NCBI GenBank assembly: GCA_977030845.1
Contig: OZ365116.1
Coordinates: 18,600,001 to 18,664,000 of the forward strand
Origin: Fimbriosthenelais zetlandica
Taxonomy: Eukaryota
DNA length: 64,000 nucleotides
Reading direction: 5' to 3'
Positions 33,166 through 61,500 of this stretch are shown piece by piece. The stretch's first letter is position 1; each line of letters opens with the position of its first letter. Below the pieces are notes generated by a model, which was not told the DNA's origin, did no database searches, and saw only the letters and a program-made list of their open reading frames with translations. The translations under genes and the position numbers were made by a program.

Positions 33166-36100
33166 TCACACTCGTTTTGGTCTTGGAATCTTTCTCCCAT
33201 CGAAATTTGTCGCACTTAGATTGCGGCTCAGTCCTTTAGCAGATGCAAAATGAATCCCTTCTTCTCTGTCATGGTTCCGCCTCATAATGCTGCAATTAAA
33301 TGGTAATTTATTTGATTTGATATCTTTGAGAGCTCTTGGCACATTAATTTTGTCATTTATTTGGAGTGTAAGTGTCAAATACTCACAATCTGATGACGAT
33401 TCCAAGTATAATCAGCAGTAGAATGCTACCAACCACACACGCTACTATAATAGTCACTGGAAACAATTTAAAACATCAATCAGTTTGTATTACATGAATT
33501 TGTGCATTTATAGAGTATATTATTATTGGTCCATAAATCGGTGGCCATATACTCTACCTACCCAAGTTATTTTGTTGCCCCTGGAGTGATTCTGTTTGGT
33601 TCGGCGTCTCGCCTGAAAATAATCAATCGTGGAATCTCATCAGGATTTGGTGACTTGATCTAACACGTCTAATGCTGAGGGTCAAATTCATTTCTTGAAT
33701 CCCAGTTTTGAATCATATTACTTACTTCTAGTGATTGGTTTGCCTGGGGTTCGACGTCTTACTTTTTCTGCTGGTATTGCCATTGGAGATGCTAATAAAA
33801 TCATAAGAAGCTTTTATAGCCGAGAGCAAGCGAATAGGAAGCTGTGATGAGGCAGAATTTGAGAGAACCACAAGATATGAAATACATGCATTTGAGTCTC
33901 TAGATTTCTAACTATTGACCGAATGTATTTGAGGTCTGACCTCTTACTAAAGAAGAATTTTTGTGTGCAATTGTTTGTGAATATGTGTGGTATTCATTTG
34001 GATTTTCTCCCTTTTATGAACTTCCAAATGAAACTGAAGTTGGTGCTATTACCTGAGGCCATCTTTGTTGCGCGCGGCATCTGGGGAATGGAGTTGTCCA
34101 GTGTTGGTGGAGCATAGGTTGGATCTGCCATGGTGGAGTAGTGTGTTGTGTCTATTGAACCAGAGGTACCAGTCAATGAAGGGGCTGTCACTTTAGCTAC
34201 TTTAGGTCTTGGTTTAGGTCTGACAGTGGTTTTTGGTTTGGGTCTAGGAGTGGGGATGGGTGGGTTGGGTGGCATGGTATGGCCCTCTTTGACATGTGCT
34301 ACATCACGGGGCCTCACATCAGAGGAAGAGGCAATTGCTAAGATCGGACCATTGAAGTCTGGAGAGTTCTTTACTTTCTCAAAAGCTGGCCAGGAAGTCC
34401 AGTCTTCTTCATCAAGGGTCTTATAAAAGTCTGATACTGACTGAATTTTACCTGCCAATTCCTCCACCACATTGTACCTGTCCTTATGCACTGAGTCAAC
34501 TAGAGTGGGTTCTGTTTTTGAGGTGGTACTGCTTGAGCTCTGTGTTGTCATGTCAAATGGCGATACATATACAGTTTTGATTGTGGATTGTTCTTCTTTT
34601 TGCCTTGGTCCTATGGCAGGCAGGTACATCTTGGGTTTTGGGCTGACAAATCTAGGCCTTTCAGTTCTCCCCTGCCAGTTCTTAGTCCTTTTTCTTTTGT
34701 ATCTTTTCATGTCATCGTCTATGCTGGACTCAAATTCATAGTTCCTGCTGTATCTATATTTTGGTCTACTTCTTACTGGATATCTCCTCCGGGGACTGTA
34801 TGTGTACTTTTCTCTTGGATATACCCTGTTCTTAATAAGATCTTTCTCTGGCATATCCATGGGTTCTATCCAAGTCACAGGTTGCAGGGCCACCTTAGAA
34901 GTTGGTACCTTGTAATTTTCCTCCTTTGGCTTGACATTTCTAAATTTGTTCCTCCTGTTGCCTCTGACTCGAATGCTAGGATTTTCTGACTTGCCTTTTG
35001 TTTTTGGATACTTTACTTTTAGCTTTTTACCTTTTATGCGTTTGTTATTTGATTTGCCATGTTTGGCTAAAGGTGGGTCAGTTTTACTCTGAGGTTTTGC
35101 TGTGGTGGGTTGTGGGGTCGTTGTTGAGGTGGTTGTATTCAGAGGTGGACTCACTGTTGTCTTCTCCTGATGTTTCTGACCTCTCTTAATCTTGGTATTT
35201 TCCAATATTTTGACAATTTTCTTGACTTTATCAGTAAAATCTCCTTTGTTTTTCTTGACCACAACTGGAGGGTCTTGACTTTGCTCCTTTCCAGTGTCTG
35301 GTCTCACATTAGTATTGAGACGCTTGCGTTTATTTTTGGAAGTAAATCTCTGGTACTTCTTCCGCTTTCTCTTGATTCCGAGTTGGTCTGATGCCTGATT
35401 CATGTTTGTGAATTTGGTTTTCTTTGTGGAATACCTTGGATGAGGCCGTAATGGTGAATTAGTAACACGCCATTCATTGTCACTCCTTCCATACGATTGA
35501 AACATGTCTTCAGAGTTGATATCAGAAGGATTCCCTGATGAATTTGAACCTTGGATATCTGTTTTCATTCTTGTGTCAAGTTTCTTGCTAGGCATTGAGT
35601 CCACTTCAGCTGGTCGACTCTTGCTTGTTCTTAAGGCAGGGTGTTCGTTTGGTGTACCTTCTGAATTATGTCCTAAATGTTTATATCTGTTGATGTTTTT
35701 GTTAGGTTGAAGAGCTGGAAGTACCCTCAGATATCTGTCTGTCTGTTTCTCTGGTTCTACCACTAACTCTTTCTCCAGTGCTCTGATCAAGGGTAAAGGA
35801 AACTGGAGTTTCTTTAGCAAGGAAGATGGGAGGTGTGACCATAGCCTTTCAGAATTTGTAGGGTTTAGGGAAAAGGTCTTGGGATCAGTCTTAGAAAAGT
35901 CAAAGTTGCCATGCTGAAGAATGTTAGGGTTAAAATAGGGGGAAGACTTGCCTGCTATCGCCTCAGGGTGTGCAGGTTTTGGGTGTTGGTAGCGGTTTTC
36001 AGTGGTAGTGGTTGTGGAGGTGCTACTAGAGGAATGACGTGGGATGGACATTGTGTGGTAGCGTCTAGACCTGGGTAGATCACTAAGCATGGTTTTATCT

Positions 36101-38220
36101 TTGGTTGGTGGGTTTGTAGGGTTGTCTCTGTAGTACTTGGTAGCATTAGGCTTCTCAGTAAACCTCCACCACCAGGGTGTAGTGTACTTGTCTGAGGTTG
36201 AGCTGCTCAAGTCTGTTTTCTCTGTATCTTGCACTTCATTGGCCTTCATAATTTTCTCTATCTTTTCTTTTCTCTTTCTCGGTTTGAAAGTCTTTTTGGG
36301 TTTTCTGGGTTTTGTTGTAAGTCTTTGTGTGGTTGTCTGAGGATCGGTGGTTGTCTCAACTATCCGATGAGTACACATCAATTTCACTGGGTTTGGGGGC
36401 GTAGCTGAAAGTGGGAGACATTTATATTGTAGATTAATATGAGAGAGACAGTGTCATTGTATTATTGCTAGGTTTAAGACTTATTGCTTCCTGATATATT
36501 AATGCTAGTTTACTCGTGAATGACACAGTGTGATGTATAGTATAACAGCTGACTGTCACCTTCATACTTTAACCAGAAGCTGCTCTTGCCACCTTGACCA
36601 TCTGTGTCAAACTTCACGTGGATGGCGTTTGTATTTGAATTAATCTTGTCAGTCTGCTGATTACAGTAGTGCGTGGTCTGTCCATTGTAGGAGACTTGTA
36701 ACTTGTTGTGATCACAAGTATAATCCTGAGACTGAAAATAACAAGTATCATTTACATATAAGACATGGTCCTGTCTGTCATCAGGCTAGATAGAATGCCA
36801 CATCTTACTTACTTTTCTTTCTATACTATTGGAGCATTAATCAGGGGTGAGGTTACCTGGAAGTCCAGCACCGTGAGCTCTATATTGCTGTCTGTCTCTG
36901 TTGTCAGACTACATTCACATTCACGAGCTGCTCCCGGGTTAATGTGACTGTTTGGACTTCTGAGGAAGCCACTCTCTGACTTTAACTTGACGCTCGTGCA
37001 AACGTCACTTACACTGTTCAGTTCAACTGAAAAAAAAGTTGCATTTACATGTTATAAATTACATGTTAGCCTATGAGTTGTTGCAGATTTTTGTATGCAG
37101 ATTGACCTGTTGATTTGAGATAAATATAAGTGTTGTCATGTGATTTAACCCACCTGGCACACAGTTAAACTCGATGTACATATAATCGCTGAAGCCGCGA
37201 CATGTTGCAGTGTTGATGTACTGTTGTGTGACGTCTAGTCGACATGCTGGACGTCCCATACACAGCGTCCGTACGTCCTGCATCTGACAGCCTCTCTGAC
37301 CGTACTCACATCCACAGTCATTATCATTATAGGCACACAGGCCCACGTGGTTCTGCACCTTCAGACCAGCCCGAATTACCTGCAATAATAGTTGGTCAAG
37401 AATAAACTGGTTTGAAATGTGCAATCAAATAAGTTATGTGAATATCTCAAGGTTTTGAATGTATCCATCAGATGGTTCCCATTTCATCCTCTACTGGGTA
37501 TACATGAAACATCTGTGAAATCATTTTTATTCGAAACTGAAATATCTGACAGTCAAACTATGCTGATTCATCTTCATTTATGGATAAAAAAAAAATATAG
37601 GCTAAAATTGATGCCCTGAATGTAACATGATAGTCATGGCCGTCTCCTGGCACGGTAACTATGGTGGCCAGCTGGTGGAGTACTTAGCCGGCTTTTATTG
37701 TGTGGCCAGGTAATAGCATTCCCATGGTAACACACTCAATTTATAACCAACCATTTTAATGTTACTGCATTTGAACTGTACAGAATATTCCGACTGATTC
37801 AAGAAGATGTTTAATATATTATTGACTGTCCTTGGATCCCCAGAAATTGGTTGCCAAGTTTGGTACCTACTAACATTTCAAGTAATATGAGTGTGTGAGG
37901 CAAAGTAGCTTATTTGGTTTAAGAGAATGTTCATGTATGAACGGTATGCCAGCCTACCTGAATGACGGTGTTTCTTGGACATTGTGCGCTGACAACTGGG
38001 GGTCCGAAACTACCCCAACAGGCATAACGCCTCTCAGGAGACTGTGCTTCCACTGAAAGTATATGAACTCTTATTCTGTCATCTTAACAATTGAGGATAT
38101 CTTAGCTATCTTAGGTAAGAAATGCAGAGCAATTGAAACAATTGTGAAAGAAATGTCAGTACCTTGATGTTGGCGAAGGCTCGCCAAGATGCCTGCTACA
38201 AGAAGCAGTTTAGCGTCCAT
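33166..38220 (-). CDS. G6: signal peptide + SUEL + CUB-like + ~780-aa basic/Thr/Pro-rich stalk + TM + short tail (~1100 aa)
   Basis: Exons 38163-38220 (MDAKLLLVAGILASLRQHQ), 37958-38052 and 37154-37379 (SUEL), 36857-37026 and 36560-36731 (CUB, RSPN..ECECS..SSFWLKYE), 34053-36404 (2352 nt, the 797-aa ORF), 33562-33612, 33387-33456 (TM VTIIVACVVGSILLLIILGIVI), 33166-33289 (tail). A further 48-nt exon near 33.76-33.81 kb is possible. Confidence 0.85.
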
Positions 38221-41200: not shown

Positions 41201-41307
41201 TTTGGTGAGGGATGTGTGCAGTAACTGGATAACTAGAGTGAAGAGACCAAACAATACATTACTTTTTGACTTTCTGAGTGGACTTCATCTGACTTTGCCT
41301 GGCTTAC

Positions 41308-44300
41308 CTCCTGAAGACGAGGACTATGATGATGACGACTGCTATGAGAATGAGCACAGTTACCACAGCACCAGTCGCCACTTGTACTGCAAGAAACCAC
41401 CACACCCTACTTGTAGATTTCCACATTAATTGGAAATAAAGATCTACAAAAAGCTTTGGTTTTGAAACCATCGCTGAGGCCAAATGTCAGTTGACTTCAT
41501 TCAGAACTGTCCCTTGCTTAAACTATTTTTGTGGTGCTTTAACTGGGAAAGACCATTTTGTGGTGGAGCTAGTATATTTTGTGTCTACTTATCGAAGTCT
41601 GTTGATGAAGATGTGCAAGTGTGACTGAGGAAATTAAGCATGCTTGGGGGAAAAAGAATAAATGTTTGGAATAAATGATCCAAAGATTATCAGTCGATGA
41701 AAAAAGTGGAGACAAATAAGGAAGAATAGCATGCTTTGAGTTAAACCTAACTGAAAATGGGTCATCCTTTCAAGGATTTTTTTTTCATATTAGAAAACCT
41801 CTTACTTCGTCCTACATTGTAGCGAAAGGATTCTTGGTGATCCATGAAGTCATAGGTGTCGAATTCATCAAAAGTGTTGCTGGTGAATTGGTTTTCAAGT
41901 TCCTCTGTGGAGGTAGATTCTGGTTCAGTGGGATATATATCTGTGTCATCTATGATGACGATGTTGTTGTCAGTGGTATCTTCAAAGTCAGTCGTACTCT
42001 CATTCAGAGAGGCTGACTCCCATTCATCCGGCTCATTGGGGGTTTGGTTTGAGATAACTGGAATCTCTGGGATCACTTGTCCACAAGTCATTGTCACTTT
42101 ACCTCCATTTGATCCTGAAAATACAAAAGAACATCTTTACTTATTTCACTGTCATCACTTTTATATGATAAGTGGAAACTTAAGATTTCAGTTTAATATA
42201 GTTGTCATATGGACATTTTCGGATCAGCAATTACCTTTGAATTCTAGCCAGAATCCTCTGTCCTGATATTTATGATCTGAGGTAAAACTGAGGGTTAAAG
42301 CCTGCCTCATAATAACTAGCTTCTCTGGTAGTCCCTCAGGTACCACTGGGTTACATTTATCTCCCCAGCTCTCTATGTTCAGCTTGTCTTCTCGACACTT
42401 CCCGTCATGCTGTCTCGAGATATTTAAAGAAAAGTCCAGGATCCACAGCAGAATGCTTCGGTCTTGTGTTTTCAGTTGACACTGGCATTTTTGTGACGAG
42501 TCATAGTTTCCTGGATAATTTGGAGAGCGGATGTACCCTTGCCAGGAAGTGACTTCCAGATCTTGGCATATGTCATGGATTATCTCGCCTAGAAGTGAGA
42601 ATAAATGCATTAATTATTGGATTACATAATTATAAAAAGATCATAAAAAGTCCAGAATATGATCTTTAATGTTGGCAAGCAATACTACTAGAATAGAAGA
42701 TTATTGATATGAGAGCAGACATGCAATGATTAGACTTACGTGGGATACATGTGTAGTTGACCTGCATGTAGTTGGCATAGCCTTCACAGTTGGTGAGGAA
42801 GGGGTTACTGACAGGCAGTGTACAGTCATTCCTGCCCATACAGTTCTCCTTCAGACTCGTGTATTGTACACAGTGTTGTTGAATGCTGTCATATTCGCAC
42901 ACATCTCTCTCATCTCTTTGTGTAGGAGCGACTCCATAGAAAGACTTCTGTACTCTGATCAGCTCCCCTACCGGACATCGTAGGTTGAGTTCAGGTACAC
43001 CGGGTACATTAAAACATTGGCTGGCAGTGTGCATATCTAGTTCCTTCCATTCATTATCATCTGTAAGCAAAATGAAACATAGTTAGTTATTTGGTTAGCT
43101 GAGACCAAGCCATATAAGGCCATGTTGGGCACATGGCAGGTTCACAGCTGCCAGGCCTCATTTATGGTTTTCAGCACAGGTCTTAGTAATTAGTTGTATT
43201 TCCAGGCACCAGGAAATGAACAGGTTATTCCCTTCCCAGATGCCTGATATGCATTAATTTTGTCCTTTGGTGTCGATTCAAGAGTCGAAATAATTGTATA
43301 TCTATGCCTCTTCCTCCAGAAGAGTTGGGATATGAGAGAAATCAGGTCAGTCGGATCAGACACATGTTTAATTGTGGACGTTGAAGTGCCAAGTTTCAGC
43401 TGATGTTGTAAGGTTCATTGGCACACAGTGAGGTATGTTAGAGGGCATACTGTTCCTTGTGAATGTCCGTGGCTGCCATCAAGGCCATGGGTTTACTTCC
43501 TGTCGCTAGGAAGGCGCCATAAACGCCAGATGTGACCCTGGAGAATTTAGCTCATTGTTATCACCAGTTACGGTGCTTTTTACAACTCAGTCTTACCGGA
43601 TTTGTTACCCAAATGGGGACAGCTTAGGCCTTTGCGTGCACTTCATTTGAAAGTTAGGGACTATAGAGATATTGAATTTTTGAATTGAACTTTGACCCTG
43701 TGTTATAAGCTGCTGTATGTCTCATTCCGCCCATGCCTTGTGAACCTCTCTCGTCATGTATTTTTTGTCAGATATGTCATTTCTATTGTGGCCTCTTGAC
43801 ATAATCTTATAAGATGTAATAGAGGTTATTTATCATTATAAATGATTGATCATCCCGGCATGCTCCGCGACATATGGCGTCACGTGCTAGCAAGGGCCAT
43901 CTGCTATTGGTCGAGGTCACCTTGACCACGACAATACTTCTCTAACCTTCATCTGACCTCTAAAATCTGGTACGGCATAAATGGACTTTTACAAAAGTTT
44001 TCTATTATTATATATGCCTTATCTCTGTTATAAGACTAGTAGGCTTATACATGATCATGAATTTTCAATTAATGTGTACATTGATGCTTGTTGCTGGATT
44101 TAACGAGTATAAAACGACACACGTGATTTAATAAGGGTATAGTATTTCGTCCTATAAAATATATTCAAGAGTTGATTTGAAATTCTCAAATGAATATATG
44201 CAGATTTTTAATTTATATTTGGATGTTATCAGATAATTTAACAAAATAGTCTTCCTCGTTTCATTGTGTACGGTCTTCATTGTGGCAACTAATATATGTA

Positions 44301-46077: not shown

Positions 46078-48158
46078 TCATCTTCTCATTGCTGCCAGCA
46101 GACCGAGCAGTATCGTCACCATGCTAGTCTTCACGTTCTCTCCACTTCCTAAGTAGTAGTCTGTGAAAGAAACAAATTAAAGGGGAAAGTTATTACCTGT
46201 TACATGGTTTGGTTAAAACAGTGCTTTAGCTTCTTAGATCTTATAGATTGTCTATGGATTGAAAGTACCTCCGTCTTTGGGTTTCCTTGTGGGACTTGGC
46301 TTCAGCTTTCTCAGGAGTTTCGGTCTAGTTGGTCCACAGGTCATCGTTATGTTGGCTGCTGGTTCAGCTGTAGAGATGTTAGAAAGAAAGTTTGGTTAGC
46401 AATTGCTTTAGGTGAGCAACGTTATTTATGCAGATGTATATTAAATCTTCACATTTATCTAGTTGCTAGAATACTGAATATACCATGCAGTTTCTGGTAG
46501 TTTCTTCTCAGTTTTTATCTCATAATTGGACTGCTTACCTTTGAAATAAATCCAGAAGCCTTTGAGATTGCGCTGGCTGTTGAACCTAAACGCCTGAGTC
46601 CTCTGATCATTCTGGTCTGAGTGAAAGTGCATCTTGAAGTCTGTACCTTTGATGGTGATGTTTTTAGTGTTGAGCAGCACCTCACCACAGTTGAGGTCGG
46701 TTCTTTTAGAGTACCCCTCCTCTGTCGACTCTATCAGCAGCCAGTCTGCACACTCAGCGTTGTTGAGCATGGCCAGAGACAGGTCAAAAAAGGAGAAGAA
46801 GATGTGGTCTGTGCCTTGAGGTTGAAGGCTGCACTCACAGTCTCTGGAGTGTGGGTAGTGATCAGGGTAATCAGGACTCCTCAGGTAGCCTCCATGCTCA
46901 TCAAACGTGTACCGTCCTCTCTTACAGATGTTGATCAAATCATAATCTGAAGTTGAACAATGTTTATGTTAAGAGAAGGCATTTCTGGATATTAATTCTA
47001 TAAAATTAAAGTATGCTTAAACTCAAATTTTTTTAATGCATCTAGGAAGTAAAGTCATTTTAATTAAATGATATTGGTGCATGTACCTGGGACACAGGAG
47101 TAGTCAGCTTGTAGATACTGGCTGTAGTTACCACATGATGGCATCCAGGACTGCTGTACTGATGTAACACAGCGCGTCCGTCCTATACAGTCCTGCCAGT
47201 CATAGAAGGACTTCATTTGGTCCTCCACGCAGTCATCGCCCTTCACATAGCACTCTGTCGTGTTCTCCAGGTGCCGGCCGTGCAGGGCTGAATTGAGCAC
47301 CAGCCGCTGATTCCTGGCGCAGTTCATGCTCACAAAGGGATTGCCTTTGGTAGCAAAACATTGGTAGACCCTTTGTATTGGACCTGTACATGAAAATTAA
47401 AAGCATATTTCATTGATTGTCCTTAGACTTTGGCTATATTGTGAAGAGGTACCTATTGCCAAAGGATAGGCGCTGTCTTGCCTTTTTGCAATAAATACCA
47501 TATATGCATTAGGCAAGTATAAATATACTATGTACCTGATATTGTACAAATATTTGTGATCATATGGACTACTGTCCATTTTTTCGGCATTTAGATTAGA
47601 CTAATGTGGTCCTGCTGGTGGCTTAGAGCGGGTAGTTGATATAGTAGGAACCATGGTGGTAACCTGCTGTTACCTGGACATAGTCTTCATACAGGTATGA
47701 GGTATAGCACAGCTGCTACATGGAATAACAGACAGGTACTCTCAGCTATCTCACACATCTACACATGTCTTAACGCCCACCTTACTGACACTATACATTT
47801 TTATCCTAATAATTTCTCTCCTTCAAGTCAGCAAGGAGAAAAAAAAATGAAAACCAATGAAAATTAACCCATTTAGAAATATTGCCATTTGTCAGTTTGG
47901 GTTGCAAGAAAACTCCCAGAAATCTCTTTCAGAACTGCCCGATGCCTTTCAGAACTTCTATGAGAATATCAGAGCAAGAATAGATTCTTTTCGATTTATA
48001 GAACAGTACTAATGGAATAGCCTAGTTGTGAAGATCTAGCATGACTGAGAAGAAAGAAGGTGTTCTTCCTCAGAAGACAGTAAACTGAACTCACCTATTT
48101 TTGCTTGTGTTAATCCAGAGTATAATCCAATGATAAGATATATAGCTAGGGTGGACAT
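46078..48158 (-). CDS. G4: signal peptide + SUEL + CUB-like + basic linker + probable GPI-type signal (~316 aa)
   Basis: Exons 48095-48158 (MSTLAIYLIIGLYSGLTQAKI), 47087-47383 (YQCF..ALHGR..YDWQDC..YLQADYSC), 46539-46946 (RSPDYP..DCECS..LKGFWIYFK), 46269-46367 (ANITMTC..), 46078-46160 (GSGENVKTSMVTILLGLLAAMRR*). Total 951 nt, open. Confidence 0.88.
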
Positions 48159-49329
48159 GACGAAACTAGACAAGATTCCCTTTTGAAGCACCATTTTGAG
48201 GGTCCTGTATATTAATTTGGGCTAGCTCCTCCTCTATCTATCCACGTCCCGATGTAGGGTTTTTCGGGGTGGAGGTTGGGATGTTGTGCTGCCTCTCCAG
48301 TCTCTGGTAATGATGGAGTCTGGTAGGAGTGACCACCTGACGACCTCTGTGTTGTTTCTACCTTGCTGCTCTTTGTCATCGGACATACATCTCACAGGTG
48401 GGTGGCTGACATCACAATCATGTGGGGTGCCCACCTCCCACCACCAACTGTCGCTCCACAAATAGCACCATTTCTCATTGGAATTGGATCCATGGGTGGA
48501 TTTTGGGTCATGGACTACATTGCTAAAACATCTTAGAGTTGTCTTTATGAAAGATATAATCATGCTGGTTAAATATTTCTTTCATTTTCGTCTAGAAGTC
48601 TGTGGTAATTTGCAGGAATATGATGGCTCTTTTAAAAGAGGAATTATCTTTTTTTCCGGTTTATTGTATGCACCGTATGTCAGTGTGTACATGCCATCAT
48701 TCAGGATCCGTCACTCCTGATATTTATGTGTGTGCCATAAAAATTCCAGAGCAGAACCTTTTAAGGATATTGGAGTTCCACCGTACACATGGAACTGCTC
48801 TCAGAAAGGTTTTGAAAAGCACATGCCATTCTGATGAGCATTGGTTATAGTGTACCCCTCGATATTTTTCACCAAAGTTAATGTTACTTTTCATTTGGTT
48901 TTGGAAGATACTTAACTAACTTTTATGAAATATTGGATAGTTTAAACTACAGGATAATAAGGGAACAAAGTTAGTCAGTAAAATATTTATTTTTCCACTG
49001 CCTCTGTATATATACAGAATGAAATATTTCACCTAAATAGAGCAATTCTAAATGGCTATATGAGCAAACTACATTGTGACGGATATCTCGGGATCCTATG
49101 TCATCTATATACATTAGCATTGTGAAGCTAAGCTCTATAAACCTAATACATGTATGCCTACTTGTTCTTTAGGCAAACAACATTAAAAAACTGTCTTCAC
49201 TGCCACCTGTTATCATAGAAATATTATACACAGTAAAATATGAAATTTGTACAATTGTGTTTAAACAACAAACTAAATATTAAACGAAAACTATTCACAA
49301 AAATATGTAACTCCATCTGAAGGCGTCGT

Positions 49330-51293
49330 CTATGGTTTCAGTAAGGTTAAGATGATGGTGAGGAGGTATATGACTGGACTAATTGATGTCCTGCTCACTG
49401 CTGACCTGTCCTGCTTCTGGCGGGAAACCCCGAAGTTAGTTGGTGGTAATGCGTACGGCCTGTCAGGGTCCGCTGAAAAACATGATATAGTACAGTGTCA
49501 GTAAGTCTTACTGTTAAACTTGGCTGGTTTCAAGAAAACATTTTCATCGTTTTAGCATTCAAATTCACTTTGAAGATAAGAGTTTTGAAAAGTGACCTAC
49601 CTGAGGCAGACCCAGGTGGAATGGCTTTCAGTGCTTCAGATGGCATGGTCTTATAGCAGTCAATCGTCATATCCTTACTACCTGAAAATCAGAAATGGCC
49701 TTAGTTAGAATAGGGGAAATGTATGACAGAACCTGGGTGATATGATTGTTGTTGTGACTCTCATATGGAAGGATATCATGGCATATACACATTAGTATTG
49801 GTCAAGATGTACCATACTCACTCGTGACTCTGATACTGAATCCTCGCAGGTTCTTCACCCCCATACTCTTCATGGAGTGGAAGTGTAGTATAATGTGTGA
49901 TGATCTTGACTGTAGAGACTTTCTACCAGCATCTATATCATGACACACCACTACTCCAGCCCCTTTATACATGGGTGACTCCAACATGAGCCAGTCATCA
50001 CACAGACCATCCTCCATACTCAGCTGAACATCTTCAAATGTCACCGTGATGCTGCCTTCATCTTTACTCATGATTTCACACCGGCAGTCCATGTTGTACG
50101 GGTAGAAGTGAGGGTAGCCGGGAGTCTGCACATAAAGATCTGAGTTGAATAGTGTCTTGTTCAGGCAAATGTTGGCTGCTTTGATTCCTTGCTCTGTAAA
50201 ATAGAAATATCATTGTTTTGGATGAGCTCTAGGGAATCATTTCAGTCTTCAAGTAGTTAAATGCATCATGAAATGTGTAGAGTTTTATAGGAGTTTAGTT
50301 TAGGTCTGATTACTTGCCCATCTTGGTAATGGTAATTGCAGGGGAAGGCTTGGTCTTTGTAGGCGTTTCGTTCTCATTTACAACCGCTACCTCCTTCACC
50401 TTGTTTGCAGATATTGGCTTATATGATGTGGCTGTTCCTAAGAAAAAAAGATTCTTAAGTTATTGTTAGTCAAAAAATGAGATGCTTCTTACCATCGTAG
50501 AATAGCTTCTTAATCTTATGATATTATGAGTAAATCCCAGCATACCCTTGGAGACATTACCTTTGACACAGGTATAGTGGACCTGGAAGTAGGTAGGGGT
50601 TGGTGCATCACAGGATGGCATCTCACCAACCTGCTGTACCAGCTGTACACAGCTGTGCCTCGCCTCACATCGACTCCAGTCATACTGTGATCCCATGTCC
50701 AGCGTACAGTCTCCTTCAGTGTGGAAACAACCATTTGACGGATCTTTTGATATTCCATAGAAGGCACGTTGGACGTGAACTACCTTGCCAATGCCACAGT
50801 AGAGAGTAACAAATGAGATGGTATTGGCTGTGAAACATTGACTCGTTGCTTTGGTTCCTGTAAAGAGAAGAATAAAAGAGGAAGATCAAAAAATGTCTCT
50901 GTGCAATGCCACCAGATGTCAGTCTTGCTCATGCAACAGTTTTTTCAACCTTTTGCTCAAAATTTAGGTTTAGGATTAGATCTATAGAAGGAAATGTGCA
51001 CTGTATACATGAGGGTTCCATCTTGTACTGCAAGCTTTTTACATGGTAGATCCTATTGCAACACAGCAGATTTAAAGACTAACTGTGAATGCACAGATAC
51101 AGAGTTTAATGGCATTAAAATCTTAAGGCACCAGTTGATATCTGGAAGTAATAAGATGTCGTGTTAAGCAGGACCTTGTGGGTGACCTGGCAGAAGTTAC
51201 ATGATCTTTGATCTCACCTGGCTCAAGAAGTTCAGTTGGTGTCACTCCTAATGAAAGAATTCCACAGGCGATGGCTATTAAGAGACGCAGCAT
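49330..51293 (-). CDS. G3: signal peptide + SUEL + CUB-like + GPI-type signal (~322 aa; in-frame upstream ATG at 51359)
   Basis: Exons 51218-51293 (MLRLLIAIACGILSLG..), 50561-50857 (SQCF..AFYG..YDWSRC..YFQVHYTC), 49822-50193 (QTPGYP..DCRCE..LRGFSIRV), 49601-49681 (MTIDC..), 49330-49472 (..DRSAVSRTSISPVIYLLTIILTLLKP*). Total 969 nt, open. Confidence 0.9.
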
Positions 51294-53165
51294 CCTCCTC
51301 CATGGTCCTAAATCCGAGAGACCAACAGGAGAGAACACAGGAACCTCCTCCAGAGGCATCTCCCCTTTTGAGTTGTGATTTCCTGTAAAAATCTCCCAGT
51401 ATTGTCTACCCGACTCCCGGTGTTAGATTTGGTGATGTGGACAGAGCCTGATTAGAGATTAGTCGGTGTAGATGTAGCCATTATGTTGTTGTATGTCGTT
51501 GCTTGTTGAGGGTCGTCATAGGGCCTGGTAGACGGTCCTCCTGAACTCCCGGAGTGCGCACCTGTCTCACCTGGTCACAGGAGGAGAGCCGCAGAGAGAG
51601 ATGGATGGTGATCAGAAACTGCTGAGTCACTGGTCACAGATGGTGGGCGATAATAAGTGGAGCTTGGTAATGGTCACCAATATACACCTCTCCACCCTGC
51701 TTCCCCCTTATTTACATAATACCGATAGATATACGAGACATATATTGGTTTACAATTCAACATTAAACATATGGCAATCTTATTGAAAGTAGGTTTGAAG
51801 TTGATGCTTTATGATGCTCTATCCATTGAAGATAATTGTACTGGATGATTGGATCTAAATGGTGACATTAGAAGTCAGATTTGTGTGGGAGTGGTTCTAT
51901 GAACACCTGGTGTGTTAAATCTGACAGGGTCCTTGCCAATAAATGAATAAAATGGCCTTACATTGAAGCTTTTTTACAACAAATAGTACTGAATATTGGG
52001 TCCTATCCTGAAATTTTCTGTCGAAAATATCCAAGTTTGAGTACAAATCATGTCAGATAACGGCAGTGTGTGAACTCCTAGCACTTACACTCTAGTTATC
52101 TGCTATACCCTGGAATAGACTTACTTATCTTGCCTCAGAATAATTTACGTCCCTTAATAGACTAGAAAAAGTGGTGCCTGGACTGGTGACCATCAATAGA
52201 TCAGGCTTTAAGGTGGGATTCACCAGCTGTCACTGCTATTACCCAGCTGTCACTGTCACACATACTTCCTATCAAGGTCACACCAAAGTACACGGGATTA
52301 ACACATTCAAAGCCAACCCAGCAAAATTTAATTAAACCCTTCTTAAACTCTTCCATATATATAGGCAGTGTCACTTGTGTTACCCTTTCTTTGCTCAGTC
52401 CGCCGTTTCTTGGCAGGAAGTGGCCATTTTCTGGCAGAGTAAAGAGCATATATTAAAAAATATATATACTAATTTTCCTAATTAATTCATCACTGCTTTA
52501 AATTTGAATTTTGTATGTTTATCGTGAAAACTTTCTTAATTATTCTTCATTCATTATTTCTAATACTTGTTGATTTAATCATGTAATATTTGTTTCTTTT
52601 CTCTTCCATGTGTTGCCTTTGCTGTTCTCTACTAAAGGTAAGCATTCATGTCGATATCTTATATACATTATTTCAATTCTAAATGTTGGTTCAATAAGAA
52701 ATAAGTTAAGTATAATACACATAAAATATTTTGTATTATATATACGTTTATTTTCATCAAAATATACACAGATGAATCTGTTCATATTTCCAAATGTTCG
52801 CTAGGAAATTGATTGGATATTGATTCGGATATTGATTCGGATATTATCTAGAGTGAATTACTTTCCTTATTCTCTGAAATGAATTCTTTTCAGTTACTCT
52901 GCAATGCCATTCTATCTAAGCTTAAAGACAAAGTATATTTTATGCATAATCACCTCAATTTTTCTAACCAATCATTCCCATGTTATTATGCCCAGCATAT
53001 TTACATAGCCTGTTTACTAATCCTGGATTATATTTAGCTGCGTTCCTTGGGCGTTTCAAGCGGTTTGAAAGCATTCTGCGATAGACAAACGCTAGAACTA
53101 CAATTTGAATATATTTAACTGATTCCAAAATGACTGAAGACTTAAGCTCACTGAGCCTGACTTAA

Positions 53166-53205
53166 GATAATGAGCATGTGAGCTGGATAATGAGCATGTG
53201 AGCTG
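53166..53205 (+). repeat. 20-bp unit x2
   Basis: gataatgagcatgtgagctg is repeated perfectly. Confidence 0.9.
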
Positions 53206-54035
53206 ATTATAATACAGTGTACTTATATAGAGAGTATTTTGAGCATTTTATTCTCATGAGTAGAATATGTTATGAGTATCTGCTTGGGCATATTTACAGC
53301 CCTGTATACGAGAGAAAGTGACCTGCTTCTTTTACTGACAAAATTTGAAAGTTATGGTTTGACACTGCAGGGTTATACATTAGCCTTGACTAAGATTTAT
53401 GTGAATTATGATTTACCCAATCTTATATTAAAATAGTAAGTTAGTATAGTAAAGAGATTGTCTGAGACAGTATACCTCCTCCAAGAATGAATTAGGATAT
53501 ATACATCTACTGATTCCTTGATGCAAAGCAGCCCAGCCTAAGCAAAGAAATTAATTAGACTGATTTAGATCTGACTCACTAATTATCAACTTGTACTCTA
53601 CTTGACGACCTTTCATGCATTATGCTTACATATCATTGAGAGATCATATTCCCACAGCATGATATAACATACTGAAATAACTGACCTCTGAAAGGGTTAT
53701 ATAGCACAGATTATGATGTTAACATGTGATTCATTATATGGATGGACCCAGGATCCTGCAAGAGGTACCAGTGTATATACATGAATACCTGGTGATCAGC
53801 CATAGAGCACCATACTTGGTACAGTTTTCTGCTTGCTATAGTGGCTTGATGATTTGCATAGCTGATTCTTTAGAGACTGCTTCCACATAGAATTTTTGTC
53901 ATAGGCTTAATTACATTTTTGCGTTTCCTTGTTTTGGAGCTTGAGTCAGAGTCTCTATTGAAAGCTTACGAGGGAGAGATGTAGCAGTCTATGTCCCTGG
54001 GAAGCATACAATGATGGCGGGTGGGTACATGTGGC

Positions 54036-56384
54036 TCACAAGTGGTACACTAGGCTGGTTAGAGCGGCTATGCTGGCCATTAGCAGGGTTGCTGAATGCT
54101 GATGTCCGCCATTAGAGTCTAGTTGATTTGCTGAAAATAGTAATTATAAACACATTGCTTAGTACACTTGGAGATTGCCGCTCTGGAGAATGAATTCAGA
54201 ACATAAACTTAGTATCATGCTTTCACTAGAGTCTGGCTATGGGCTACAATGAGATGCTTTGACATTTTTTGAGACTGAGTAAATCTACTTACCGCCATGA
54301 TGCCCTCTCTCGGCTTGAGCATTGTTGAATTTATTGCCAGGCTTGCGCATCCTCTTGCCACCACCAGGCCGTTTCTTGGGTCCGTCCATCTTGTCGCCCT
54401 TCTCAACGGTTTCGTTTAGTTCTGTCGTCATCATGGTGGTCGTCTCCGTGGCCTTGGTGCTGAGGATCTCATCATACTCAGCATCGTCCTTGGTGATCTC
54501 CTTCACCTCAGTGTCTGCTGAAGACATGGACCGGCAGGCTATGCGAACTGATGCCTTAGGTTCAGCTGCAATCAAAAGAAAATTGGATATTTTTAAGGAT
54601 TGAATAATACCTTTTATATGCTATTATTAAGAGATGAGCATGTGTTTTACAAAGGTTTTACATAGGGACCATGGTTGTTGGTTCCGTACCTGTGAATGAC
54701 ATCCAGAAGCCCTTGAGTGACCTTGTGAAGTACTGGAACTTTTGGGTTCTGTTATTGTTACCATCTGAGTGGAACTGTATATCTAGTTGAGGCCCGGTGG
54801 ATGTTATGTTCTTCACCCCGGTCATGATGGCCCCGCAGTGACGATGCTTCTGGTTGTTTTGCCTCAGCATCATCCAGTCTGCACGACATCGACTGAAATA
54901 TTAATTTTTACACCTATATTTCAACTTTCATGTCATTCACAAGGTGGATCACTATTTTAAATTCCATATTCAATGTCTCATAGATTGATATGAAAGTGTA
55001 TTACCTGTTTTTCGTCTCAAGGAGGAGATCAACTAAGCTTAGTACTATTCTTGATTCCCATTGAGTTGACAGCTTACAGATACAGTCCTTGTTGATGGGG
55101 TAGTTATAAGGGTAGTTGGGGCTCATAATGAACCCGTCGTTTACTGTAGTCTCTATGTGCTCACAGATGTTGTAGACCTTTTTCCCTGAAAAGTAAAAGC
55201 ATCGCTTAATATCATCTAATCTCTCAGATGATAATGAATTTTATGAAGACTGAAAATAAAAATGGACTAGAAAAAACTGTTGTATGCACATACTTGGAAC
55301 ACATTGGTACTCCACTTGTAAGTAGTCGGAGAACTTCTTTTTCGTTCCTTGGCAGGTTGGCATATAAGACTGCATGACTGTCCGTGTACAGGACCGGTTA
55401 CCCATACAGGTTGACCAGTCATACACCAGGTTCATACTGTCGTCCATACAGTCTCCTGGACAGTTAGAACAGTTATAAGAGTCCTGTCCTGGACTCAGTT
55501 CACAGTTCATCTCCCACGGCTTCAGATTCGTTTTGGTTTTGATACCATGAAAAGCTCGGTTGATTTTTATCATGTCACCATCTGCACAATCAAACTGCAC
55601 CTTGGGAATCCCCCTGCTCTTGAAACATTGGCTGGCTTTGTGAATTTTGAGATCTGTACAAGAAAAAAATGAGTTTTTATTAATATATTCAGACCAGCTG
55701 TACTTGAGAAACTCATATTAGCAATGCAACTAAAGCACCTGTCAAAATATTATAAATGTTGCCTCCCAGTGATAGTATTCCAGAAGTTCTAGATTTGATC
55801 AGGGGGAGTAATTTGAGGTATTTTAGTGTCATATATTAGTCTGAGGTAGGCATGTATAATTGGCATGATTAGGCTGTCAGATGGACGAGGCTAGGTCAGA
55901 GAGCAGGCCAGCACAAGGTGGTGGTCACTCCCTGCCTACACCGTGGACACCAATCATCTTCTTCATGGCAACAGATGGACACCATTAAACATGGCCACCA
56001 AATATTGCGTGAGAAAAACTGCTTCCCAACATCTTTCCTTGTACTGGGAACATTTGGTCATATCCGCAAATGGTTGCCAAAAAAACTTAGATATAAAATG
56101 TTACATTTGTATTATGCATTGCTTCCGTATTTTGGATGTTTTTTGAAAGTTCAAAAAGCAAATAACATGAATATACTCTGCGAATGTTGTTCACAGTTAT
56201 TCGGAAATATATTGCTAATACATGTAAGAATCTGTTAGCAATTTGTAATGTTGGCTCACCATAGATTTGGTATGAAATATCGATACAAATTTGTAAATTA
56301 AAACTCACCATTAGTGCTGACCACAGTTGCCAGGGCAACCAATAAAGCCACTGTGTAGAGGATGTGTGGCTGAATCCCCTCCAT
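54036..56384 (-). CDS. G2: signal peptide + SUEL + CUB-like + stalk + GPI-type signal (~395 aa)
   Basis: Exons 56309-56384 (MEGIQPHILYTVALLVALATVVSTN), 55294-55653 (SUEL), 55005-55185 and 54690-54892 (CUB, MSPNYP..DCICK..LKGFWMSF), 54293-54565 (ASVRIAC + stalk), 54036-54130 (DSNGGHQHSATLLMASIAALTSLVYHL*). Total 1188 nt, open throughout. Confidence 0.9.
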
Positions 56385-58596: not shown

Positions 58597-61500
58597 TTAG
58601 TGCCCGTACATATCATTTTCCATAATGAAGATCCCACGTTGTTCCTTTCTCCGGGCACCGTGTTTCCTGGCATATAATGGCTCTGTACTTCTGGCTGTGT
58701 CATAGTCAGGCTGACTGAGACTCTGAATACTGCTGCCACCTGACCTCAGATGACCTGCCTCCCCTCTACCCATCCTCATGGACGGATTCCTCGCCAGATT
58801 GATGGTGCTCTTGTGGCGTAAAGGTTTAGGTAGAGGCATGGGTCTCTTGTTTAACTTAGCGGGGAGGGTGTTGGATCTACCAGGTGGAATGTTAGCATAT
58901 GTATGCTCATTGCCTCGTGTGAAACAATCCTCAGACCAGCGTGGGAAACCAGCAAAGACATTATTGTCACCCAGGCCAGCATTGTTCAGGGATTCATTGC
59001 TGCTGAAATGTAATGTAATCTGACTGGTGGACTTTTTCTGATGATGCCTGGTGGCTTTATGCTTGGTGACTGGAGTAGGAACATTAACATATGAATGACC
59101 AGGTAATGAGGGATGTTGATGAGACTTGGCTTGTGATGATGAAGCTACTCTCTGATGATGCTCCAGTGTACCATTGTAATGGGGAGGTACACTGCTGCCT
59201 CCTTGTGTCTGTTTCCCTGTCTTACCACCTCCTCCTCCACCACGGCCTCTCTGACGACTCTGACGCTGTGCTATCAGCACATTAGCATGAACAGAGTAGC
59301 CCAGATCATTCCCCTTCTTCTTCTTCCTCTTACTGTAAAAAAACATGTAAGCATGAGTCGCTATTGGATGTAATAAATGCCTAACTGGAAACTAGTTTGC
59401 AAACATAAGCGTAAAAAAACGAAGTTTTCCTCTATAAATTACATTGGAAGGTCACACTTACCTGCTACTTTTGTGTAGACAAACTGACAAGAAGACAATA
59501 ATCAGAATGACAACCACTCCACCAGCTGCTGCTCCTCCTACGATTATTTCTGTGTGCGAAAAGAGTCATAAATAAATCCAGATTCATGAAATATGAGATG
59601 AAATAACAAAGGAGCTGCCAACGTTAACTCATTTTAGAGTATCTCCTAGACAGAGTAACTGATTGTTCTATGTCATATGATATATCGTATTGATATACCA
59701 TATACTTACTAATGTCTAGTGCCTCCTCCATCACTTCTGGTATGGATGTTGAGGTTTTCACACTTGGAGATGGTGATATAGATGTAGTTGATGTCATTGA
59801 AGTGTTTGTCACATTCCCTCCGAGGGACACAGTAGTTGTACTTTGTGTTTCCTCCTGTGAATCTACATATTTCATTGATGTTGTGGGTGTTGAGCTGGCC
59901 ATTGTTGCTGGTGTAGTGGTTAGCGTCGCTGCTTCAACATCTACAGTTGTTGCTGAAGTTGATGGTGTTGTTGGAGTAGTTGTCTGGGTTGATGTTGGGG
60001 ATGATGCTCTATGGAAAGTACTATTCAATCTGCCGTGACCAAAGTTCTGGCAGCGAACTGTCGCCTTTGAATATTCTCCAGTCTGCAAGGCAACTTGAGG
60101 AGAAAGGACACATTAATATTTAATTATTTTCATAGTATAAAGTTACATGGCCATTGCCAGCATTTAGACGGACACATTTGGTACGAATTTCTCAATAGGA
60201 TTAATCTTAGATTAAACTTTCAAACGGACATCTTGTATTATTAGATGCATACCTTTCCTGCTAATGTAAACATCTTTTTAATCTTTCCCTGAAATTGTCA
60301 CCCCTAGCCTTTTATGGCCATCTCACAATGAATCTATTATGAATCTGATAGAAGTATGTCTCAACCCCGAGCCTTCCAAGTTACCTCAAGCTTTCTTAAG
60401 TATGTTTGTGTTTGTATGAATGCCAACAAAGACCATGGCCCCCATTGGGGACAAAAAGATTATGTTGACATATGTCGGGATGTATTGACATTCATATGGT
60501 GGATCCAAGGCGGCGCTTAGCTCACCGTTACGCCCCAGTGTACAAAGTGACTAAATATATCCCATGCTACCTCCCATACCGGGATTCCCACTTTATCAGG
60601 TTCCTGTTTTAGGACCTTATGAAATAATTTAAGACCTTATGAAATAATTTCGGAATATGAAATTCCCACTTGAGCATATAATATTCCTTATAGATACATA
60701 AAATGTCTTGTTGCTGTATTCGTCCGGAATCCACTTATACTAAGGGAACTAAATCCAGTATTTTTCCGAATTCTGAAAACAATTATGATTAATTTTAAAT
60801 GAATAATTAAAGTCAATACTTACTTTGGATATCTATCCAGTATCTACCTTTGACGTTGAAGTTTTCACTGTAGAAAGTGAGTGGTATATCCTTGAATGGT
60901 TTATCAGCATCAGTTGGCTTCACATCCACCCCTTGGAAGATCATTCCTCGGGATGCGCACACCTTCTCATCGTTTATCATCACGTAGAAGGGGCAGGCAG
61001 CGTTGTTGACGTCATTGTGGGCCATGTCCCGTATGTTGATATTGGCTATACAGTTATATTCCATGCGGACTGAGCAGTGGCACTGGTCGGAATGCTGCCA
61101 TGTTGTGGGGTAACCATTAGACCGTAGTCTCACTATGCTGCTCTCTGTAGCCTCCTCACTAGACGAGCATGGGTCGAGCACAGGGTAGAGGATTCTCATA
61201 TTATCAGAGACTGAAAGGAAACATGTTTTTTGTTTATAAAGTAATTTCTCATTAATATTTTTATTTTTTTTATTTTTTTATTTTTTTTTTTTATAACAAA
61301 AATGACCAATTCCCCATAGTATAAGCTTGTATACTCACTTGGGTGACATACATATTCAATGTGTAGATACATGCTACCATAGAATCCATCACAGTCATTG
61401 AGGGGTTTATTGTTGAGGAAGAAGTTACAGTTGGAGAAGCCGTTACATTTCTTCCTGTAGAGGTCCGTCTGAGCGTCCTCTCCCAGCATGCAGTGTCCAC

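Follow-up and report, generated by a model that had tools for sequence, protein, structure and literature searches.

What holds a group of neighboring surface proteins at the membrane when they lack a cytoplasmic tail, and does the kind of anchor go together with a distinct line of ectodomain sequences? These questions are raised by a tandem gene cluster of Fimbriosthenelais zetlandica, located in the analyzed window of 64,000 nucleotides (C27:18.60-18.66 Mb of a 447 Mb assembly; approximately 40% G+C, no N). TBLASTN searches of the window with the exons of one gene revealed eight related genes in tandem on the minus strand, with family matches at about 24.7, 28.5, 37, 42.5, 47, 50, 55, and 61 kb, corresponding to G8 down to G1. 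Three adjacent members, G2, G3, and G4 (46078-56384, minus strand), are tail-less and are flanked by the transmembrane (TM)-type genes G1 and G5. We consider it probable that G2-G4 are ancient spiralian paralogs, composed of a SUEL-fold (lectin-like) and a CUB domain, in which a shortened TM exon provides a C-terminal signal of the glycosylphosphatidylinositol (GPI) type.

According to this reading, G2, G3, and G4 would be three intact, anciently diverged paralogs of type-I surface proteins sharing a family plan of signal peptide, one SUEL/rhamnose-binding-lectin-fold domain, one CUB domain, stalk, and membrane anchor. In the tail-less subfamily, the exon of the TM helix would have been shortened and closed by a stop codon, leaving a signal of the GPI-attachment type; cleavage of the propeptide would take place at a small residue that precedes the hydrophobic tail by about 9-10 positions, and a GPI anchor would display the ectodomain on the outer leaflet, without any cytoplasmic part. 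The switch from the TM to the tail-less form presumably took place once, before the annelid-brachiopod split, a single ancient truncation of the TM exon being the likeliest event, and later duplications would have produced the G2, G3, and G4 lines, which remained beside their TM-type relatives. Such membrane-tethered binding proteins might serve in recognition, in adhesion, or as accessory subunits, and any signalling by them would need a transmembrane partner.

Gene models and C-terminal ends of G2, G3, and G4

The gene models were built by reading the three minus-strand frames and every junction by hand and splicing the exons by script; the sequence itself and comparison with orthologs are the basis for the splice sites and 3' ends. 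G2 consists of six exons (56384 to 54036, 395 amino acids (aa)), while G3 (51293 to 49330, 322 aa) and G4 (48194 to 46078, 328 aa) have five each. All introns are GT-AG; the CUB domain of G2 is split by the only phase-2 intron, and every other intron is in phase 1. The common plan comprises a hydrophobic N-terminus, a lectin-like exon, CUB, a stalk exon, and a short last exon; the N-termini, judged by eye, show a hydrophobic stretch followed by small residues (putative signal peptides). The limits that the initial annotation had given for the trio were reproduced exactly by the models (G2 ATG at 56384, G4 stop at 46078-46080), which, moreover, can be aligned over their full length to independently annotated Lingula anatina and Owenia fusiformis proteins without a gap at any exon junction. 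The possibility that the three genes are pseudogenes was ruled out by the intact frames, the canonical splice sites, and a nonsynonymous divergence (pN) far below the synonymous one (pS) between G4 and its ortholog. In G3, an additional in-frame upstream ATG (MPLEEV..., window 51294-51359) was observed 22 codons before the ATG of the canonical signal peptide.

The protein encoded by G2 ends in ...SNGGHQHSAT-LLMASIAALTSLVYHL-stop, with a 16-residue hydrophobic run and no residue after it, whereas G3 ends in ...SAVSRTSISP-VIYLLTIILTLL-KP-stop and G4 in ...GSGENVKTS-MVTILLGLLAAM-RR-stop, each with a 12-residue hydrophobic run. The uncharged cores of G2, G3, and G4 span 19, 17, and 14 residues, respectively (mean Kyte-Doolittle value 1.5-2.05), compared with cores of 25-40 residues (mean 2.1-2.75) in the TM exons of G1, G5, G7, and G8, which close with KSSR, RR, KK, or RIKKR and are followed by cytoplasmic exons. 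This bears out two earlier claims, namely that the trio has tail-less ends made of small residues, a spacer, and a hydrophobic stretch (0-2 residues follow the tail, in the layout of a GPI signal), and that it sits between TM members (G1 and G5 have cores of at least 25 residues plus cytoplasmic exons).

In a GPI signal, small residues occupy positions omega-1 to omega+2 and are followed by a spacer (omega+3 to omega+9) and a terminal hydrophobic tail (PMC2571997). A home-made rule check against this layout, and not a trained predictor, was applied here. The layout was found in all three proteins, with SNG/NGG in G2, GSG in G4, and SAV/AVS in G3, located 9-10 residues ahead of the tail. Extended to all tail-less members known from at least four genomes, the check showed small residues at triplet positions 1 and 3, 6-12 residues before the tail, in 11 out of 11 cases. 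From these features, GPI anchoring of G2-G4 is predicted, and we regard it as likely.

Several points weigh against this prediction. The anchor type is deduced from rules known to be unreliable, since the prediction of GPI signals is fallible and GPI and TM features are easily confused (PMC10863630). Moreover, G4 closes with RR and G3 with KP, the tails of both hold only 12 strongly hydrophobic residues, and in one reading of G3 the best omega+2 residue is Val. The initial annotation had called the RR end of G4 the least typical one; the two arginines are indeed there, but they parallel the basic residues closing the TM exon of G5, and the closest G4 ortholog still ends with one R. The last exon of G4 occupies the same place after the stalk exon, with the same phase-1 acceptor, as the TM exon of the paralogs, and G4 reads RR-stop where the TM exon of G5 reads RR-donor.

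Such features would also suit single-pass proteins that are not GPI-modified and whose short hydrophobic end acts as a minimal TM anchor with a cytoplasmic tail of nearly zero length. The position of the last exon at the place of the paralogs' TM exon, the RR of G4 found as at the end of the G5 exon, the uncharged stretches of 17-19 residues in G2 and G3 (counting polar Ser/Thr), and the cited confusion of the two kinds of features agree with this alternative. However, the strongly hydrophobic runs span 12-16 residues, compared with at least 25 in every TM paralog, the small-residue triplet stands at the expected distance in all 11 members, and DYYL-G/E-S/G-G is conserved in the G4 line while the tail is free to vary; in addition, the tail in the AlphaFold2 model of the Lingula ortholog has a pLDDT (predicted local distance difference test) below 50 and forms no helix, which is weak evidence. 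A minimal TM anchor is thus considered unlikely.

The comparison of G4 with its ortholog in L003, a locus of a close relative from an ENA assembly, bears on the nature of the last exon as well. The ectodomains are 71-77% identical (pN 0.17, pS 0.78, the latter saturated), and the C-terminal exons are 37% identical with the hydrophobic character kept; that of the ortholog reads DYYLEGGGSRTD, with an 18-residue hydrophobic run, then R and the stop. This pattern fits an exon constrained in its properties and not in its sequence, as would be expected of a signal that is removed.

It may also be asked whether the models are incomplete, i.e., whether the exons with the stops represent one isoform and alternative 3' exons yield TM forms, as in NCAM. 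The dependence of the modelled 3' ends on sequence and orthologs leaves room for this, but on the coding strand of the intervals between the stops of G2, G3, and G4 and the next gene (1.1-2.9 kb) no TM-like open segment was found, although the same scan detects the control TM exons. Furthermore, AATAAA signals are located approximately 340-780 bp past the stops, and the independently annotated Lingula and Owenia proteins end alike, so we rate such isoforms as very improbable. No GT donor directly follows the RR codons of G4. Relics of cytoplasmic exons were not found downstream of G2-G4 either, in a search that has limited power, given that even among the TM paralogs the tails are not alike.

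Relatives, sequence signatures, and phylogeny

When the whole library was searched by HMMER with the G4 CUB exon, multi-CUB proteins filled much of the result, and the single-stretch matches were used. These single-domain matches (34-70% identity) included P0013, P0063, P0115, P0152, and P0154 of the brachiopod Lingula anatina and P0049 of the annelid Owenia fusiformis, all annotated as "uncharacterized protein" or present as unnamed entries, as well as further relatives in ENA and other unannotated assemblies and in contigs of sequencing runs. All full-length relatives found in this way have 327-375 aa, the YDW motif, and a hydrophobic tail, and are devoid of a cytoplasmic part. The taxon sampling is thin, since word-indexed protein searches yielded only two proteins for P0013 and four for a six-protein profile. 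Among the Foldseek matches to the two-domain model there were also proteins shown without an organism, whose accessions we take to be annelid, mollusc, brachiopod, and rotifer entries.

Four shared motifs had been proposed, two for the whole trio and two for G2 and G4. YDW occurs as quoted in G2 (LVYDWSTC), G3 (QYDWSRC), and G4 (FYDWQDC), and in none of G1 and G5-G8; across at least four genomes, 10 of 11 tail-less members carry it, with YYW in its place in the eleventh, whereas none of the ten other family members, including the outgroup, does. YDW is, at the level of sequence, a conserved signature of the tail-less class. The MP[TS]C motif likewise exists in the trio (YMPTC, EMPSC, and WMPSC) and is lacking in G1 and G5-G8, but it does not hold as a family signature, being confined to this genome and a close relative, i.e., lineage-specific. 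AEP.A is restricted to G2 and G4, as stated earlier; the same distribution was confirmed for HSD.N..RTQ.F...LKGFW, although the spacing written as F...LKGFW is 6-7 residues instead of three.

For the phylogenetic analysis, lectin and CUB segments were used in IQ-TREE with the site-heterogeneous LG+C20 model (posterior mean site frequency, PMSF), applied to 17 rows, i.e., G1-G7, five Lingula and two Owenia genes, two genes from other assemblies, and one upstream Lingula gene. After removal of the two longest rows, the tail-less/TM split obtained support of 98/98. In the tree rooted on a second SUEL-CUB cluster (C27:3.22-3.26 Mb), the 11 tail-less rows formed a clade (91/98), one anchor change sufficed, and the TM state was ancestral, with a rooting weakened by long branches. 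The lectin domain alone also produced the tail-less clade (95/97), with G1 and G8 outside. Within the clade, G2 grouped with the Owenia G2-like gene (85/79), and G4 with its L003 ortholog (100/99), the latter pair being nested in a group of G3/G4-type genes (94/98); G3 is matched to the Lingula G3-like gene chiefly by its place in the gene order, since both have long branches. The ectodomain phylogeny thus upholds the view that the anchor type tracks ectodomain sequence.

Other results of this analysis are less favorable to a single tail-less clade. With all 17 rows, two anchor changes are required for the tail-less genes, since the clade is broken by G1 (branch length 6.9), which is placed with the Lingula G2-like pair; forcing the clade costs 1.5 log-likelihood units (approximately unbiased (AU) test, p = 0.35). 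The CUB-only tree does not contain the clade, which is not rejected there either (AU p = 0.49). Finally, the TM-type rows and the outgroup all have long branches, and for this reason long-branch attraction could make slowly evolving tail-less genes look monophyletic.

Pursuing the last point, the tail-less genes might be merely the slow members that kept ancestral motifs, with the tail lost repeatedly or with the tail-less form being ancestral. Consistent with this, the tail-less branches measure 0.1-0.6 (except for the G3 type) compared with 1-7 for TM rows and outgroup, the split is missing from the CUB-only and all-rows trees, and pairwise identities in the window are barely higher within the trio (33-39%) than between G2 and G5 or G7 (34-35%). 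On the other hand, the split was recovered at 91/98, 95/97, and 98/98 in three data sets under a site-heterogeneous model and was never rejected in the AU tests, the fast-evolving G3-type rows still fall inside the tail-less group, and YDW is absent from 10/10 other members, including the outgroup. An artefact of this kind appears quite unlikely to us.

In the initial annotation, G2-G4 were taken for a sequence subclade; as a local group, this had to be corrected, as a recent local triplication, i.e., an exclusive clade of the window genes, was rejected by 120 log-likelihood units (AU p = 2.6e-6). The trio is instead composed of three ancient paralogs with tail-less counterparts elsewhere, those of G2, G3, and G4 in Lingula and those of G2 and G4 in Owenia.

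The loci of the relatives, searched with the exons of the window genes, show a corresponding arrangement. In Lingula, G2-like A, G2-like B, G3-like, and G4-like genes are located on one strand in two contigs, and on the longer contig they are followed by an unannotated G5-like gene (39% identity to the G5 lectin exon, E = 2e-29). The Owenia locus has a G4-like gene (343 aa; the last exon ends ...YTLGGASS...LLIRL-stop) after a G2-like one, and L003 contains the 3' end of a G3 ortholog and then the G4 ortholog (69-71% identical). As an analogy, the ligand or co-receptor pairing of tail-less with TM members suggested in the initial annotation would be plausible and compatible with the data. In a far stronger form, the trio and its TM neighbors would be a conserved module, the GPI-type proteins acting as obligate partners, in cis as co-receptors or in trans as ligands, of the neighboring TM paralogs with their tyrosine motifs, and the G2-G3-G4-G5 linkage would have been kept since before the annelid-brachiopod split through co-regulation of the partners; this version we regard as improbable. 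If true, spiralians would possess a hitherto unrecognized system of cell recognition based on SUEL-fold and CUB domains.

Upstream of the Lingula tail-less genes (L006 1-8587, contig LFEI02001038.1), there is an annotated gene of 1489 aa with two SUEL domains and one CUB, followed by a 468-aa gene without a recognizable domain, which may be a mis-split 3' part of the former. The lectin-CUB unit of the 1489-aa gene joins G1 in one tree; the orthology of the two is unproven, since both have very long branches.

Ectodomain folds, putative ligands, and known anchor systems

The scores of the lectin-like exons against the Pfam profile PF02140 (SUEL_Lectin) speak against the domain assignment, since G4 (27.3 bits), G3 (22.7), and G2 (19.6) are all below the gathering threshold of 31.4. 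With 45.9 bits, G5 passes this threshold, and TBLASTN shows its homology to G2-G4 (E down to 2e-12). A sequence search of PDB returned relatives of the CUB domain only and no SUEL chain. As Foldseek matched the two-domain model to CUB only, the lectin exon of G4 was folded alone, giving an AlphaFold2 model with pLDDT 91, whose best PDB matches were the Lec domains of latrophilins 1-3, the sea-urchin SUL-I, and the Lec domain of Caenorhabditis elegans LAT-1 (probability 1.0, template modelling score 0.60-0.65, E about 2e-3). The SUEL/RBL domain has about 100 residues and eight conserved cysteines forming four disulfides (PMC10817417); eight Cys are found at aligned positions in G4 and G3, and also in G2, which has extra Cys within an insertion.

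The sugar-binding motifs of SUEL domains are YGR, DPC, and KYL (PMC10817417). At these positions, the alignment of G2-G4 shows HGR, HGI, or YGI; P-S/T-C, with the Asp gone; and Q/D/T-Y-L/F, with the Lys gone. Because the sugar motifs are mostly lost, we refer to a SUEL-fold domain with lectin activity unproven, and binding of a protein is at least as likely as that of a sugar. The latrophilin and LAT-1 Lec domains, the best structural match of the G4 exon, have in common with it the eight Cys and a length of about 100 residues, and, according to the titles of PDB entries, latrophilin Lec binds proteins (teneurin, TOL-1). In contrast to latrophilins, G2-G4 fall under the Pfam threshold, have neither DPC nor the K of KYL, keep YGR only in part, and lack the G-protein-coupled receptor part. 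Both the degeneration of the sugar motifs and the fact that the structurally closest Lec domains have protein ligands point towards protein binding.

For the CUB domain, G4 (41.3 bits) and G3 (33.9) exceed the PF00431 threshold of 21.4 bits; the CUB of G2 is split over two exons, the second half of which scores 17.5 bits, below that threshold. Profile matches in PDB comprise cubilin, MASP, C1s, neuropilin, and TSG-6, and the fold was recognized by Foldseek (probability 1.0) in the model of the Lingula ortholog P0013. In CUB domains of the G2/G4 type, the SD and GF motifs are separated by an inserted segment of about 11 residues (RTQ.F...LK), which is poorly modelled (pLDDT 43); its motif is present in 9/9 of these genes and absent from the G3 type.

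Some CUB domains, though only a subset, bind Ca2+ through a Glu/Asp/Asp triad, which was judged here by sequence alignment to LE, DY, and SD of cubilin. All three residues are kept in G2 and in most G2/G4-type orthologs, which is a hint of a Ca2+-dependent CUB site in these proteins. The Ca2+-binding CUBs (cubilin, C1s/MASP, neuropilin, and TSG-6) are the best match in both sequence and fold; the differences from cubilin-type domains are the G2/G4-type insertion, an Ala in place of the triad Glu in G4, and, in G3, the absence of both the Glu and the last Asp of the triad. At the position of the Glu, the G4 CUB (46539-46946) reads LSLAM and its 71%-identical ortholog (L003 9800-10240) LALEM; G2 and the relatives in Lingula and Owenia retain the Glu.

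All members, tail-less or TM, have a Cys a few residues into the stalk exon, in the contexts ITMTC (window 46269-46367), VRIAC (54293-54565), MTIDC (49601-49681), VTMTC (41765-42136), VTISC (L001 18836-19210), and IKIKC (L002 21452-21697). An extra Cys was observed in a C.C pair inside the CUB domain, and both features are invariant in a six-protein alignment. The two cysteines may form an additional disulfide tying the stalk to the CUB domain.

Anchor changes of this kind have parallels. In the CEACAM cluster, GPI members were derived from TM members through changes of the TM exon, recently and repeatedly in primates, with a TM exon cut short by a stop serving as the GPI signal. The locus described here resembles it as a tandem cluster mixing GPI-type members with TM members bearing tyrosine motifs, but it would reflect one ancient event conserved across phyla, and the domains differ. 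In ephrins (ephrin-A/ephrin-B) and semaphorins, the anchor type likewise coincides with a sequence subclade of one family; these families include both GPI and TM members, the former having no cytoplasmic part and signalling via partners (PMC10863630). Their domains are unrelated to the SUEL-fold and CUB domains found here, and here both classes are located in one tandem cluster. The initial annotation had also invoked Dpr/DIP and GFRalpha-RET, which include GPI-anchored binding proteins needing TM partners to signal (PMC10863630); however, a GPI anchor is present in Dprs as well as in DIPs, which bind one another, and hence they do not exemplify the pairing of a GPI with a TM protein.

Neither the anchor dichotomy nor the TM-to-GPI route is new, both being known from other families. 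For this SUEL-CUB architecture and family, nothing relevant was found in the literature, and, as far as the literature search shows, the family and its conserved tail-less branch are undescribed. Families divided into GPI and TM classes (ephrins, semaphorins, CEACAMs) are central to cell recognition, and the same anchor logic would now extend to an uncharacterized family of SUEL-fold and CUB proteins widespread in spiralians. It offers a tractable case for the origin and maintenance of an anchor switch, as the tail-less class seems to have arisen once, is diagnosed by YDW, bears a unique CUB insertion in two of its three lines, and has TM relatives adjacent in the brachiopod. The value of the locus is that of a well-defined lead, which provides a short list of candidate surface proteins for binding screens in animals with almost no known receptor-ligand pairs.

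Coordinates and surroundings of the cluster

Table 1. Exons of G2, G3, and G4 and selected exons of the flanking genes (positions in the window)
Feature	Position	Strand	Remarks
G2 exon 1	56309..56384	minus	ATG at 56384; putative signal peptide (MEGIQPHILYTVALLVALATVVSTN); donor GTGAGT, phase 1
G2 exon 2	55294..55653	minus	Divergent SUEL-fold domain; LVYDWSTC, YMPTC
G2 exon 3	55005..55185	minus	CUB, first half; followed by phase-2 intron
G2 exon 4	54690..54892	minus	CUB, second half; contains FHSDGNNNRTQKFQYFTRSLKGFW
G2 exon 5	54293..54565	minus	Stalk, about 90 aa, highly charged; begins AEPKASVRIAC
G2 last exon	54036..54130	minus	Stop; candidate omega S-N-G (S at 54114-54116), 7-residue spacer
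G2 hydrophobic tail	54039-54086	minus	16 residues, closes the protein
G3 exon 1	51218..51293	minus	Putative signal peptide (MLRLLIAIACGILSLG...)
G3 exon 2	50561..50857	minus	SUEL-fold domain; QYDWSRC, EMPSC
G3 exon 3	49822..50193	minus	CUB without the G2/G4 insertion; fast-evolving
G3 exon 4	49601..49681	minus	Short stalk (SSKDMTIDC...)
G3 last exon	49330..49472	minus	Stop; candidate omega S-A-V / A-V-S (49396-49404), spacer
G3 hydrophobic tail	49339-49374	minus	12 residues, then KP and stop
G4 exon 1	48095..48194	minus	ATG at 48194; putative signal peptide; donor GTGAGT
G4 exon 2	47087..47383	minus	SUEL-fold domain; FYDWQDC, WMPSC; eight Cys
G4 exon 3	46539..46946	minus	CUB; contains FHSDQNDQRTQAFRFNSQRNLKGFW
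G4 exon 4	46269..46367	minus	Stalk, basic, proline-rich; begins AEPAANITMTC
G4 last exon	46078..46160	minus	DYYL-GSG; candidate omega G at 46147-46149, 6-residue spacer; stop 46078-46080
G4 hydrophobic tail	46087-46122	minus	12 residues, then RR and stop
G1 TM exon	59461..59565	minus	Upstream neighbor; 25-residue core, then KSSR
G1 cytoplasmic exon	58600-59391	minus	264 aa, after the TM exon
G5 TM exon	41307..41486	minus	Downstream neighbor; 31-residue core ending RR, then splice donor and further exons

The 10 kb past the right end of the window (C27:18664001-18674000) contain no family member, and the cluster is consequently regarded as ending at G1; a weak SUEL match was noticed about 51 kb further on (C27:18710001-18720000). 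Within the cluster, G6 has one open exon of 819 codons (window 33997-36453), very basic and rich in Lys, Pro, and Thr, placed between its CUB domain and a candidate TM exon (33386-33475).

In the whole genome, at least 72 exons match the SUEL_Lectin profile, mostly on contigs C10, C1, C25, and C27, showing that the SUEL domain is strongly expanded in this genome. The second SUEL-CUB cluster, used above as the outgroup, is located on the same chromosome (C27:3.22-3.26 Mb), and at least one of its genes carries a TM segment and a cytoplasmic exon of 347 aa, in which a GH[AT] repeat was observed (C27:3248001-3258000). In another part of this cluster (C27:3219001-3229000), two lectin-CUB units lie approximately 650 bp apart, possibly as one gene with a doubled ectodomain, and an intron there contains a tandem repeat with the in-frame reading ILTLLDIQVINPT.

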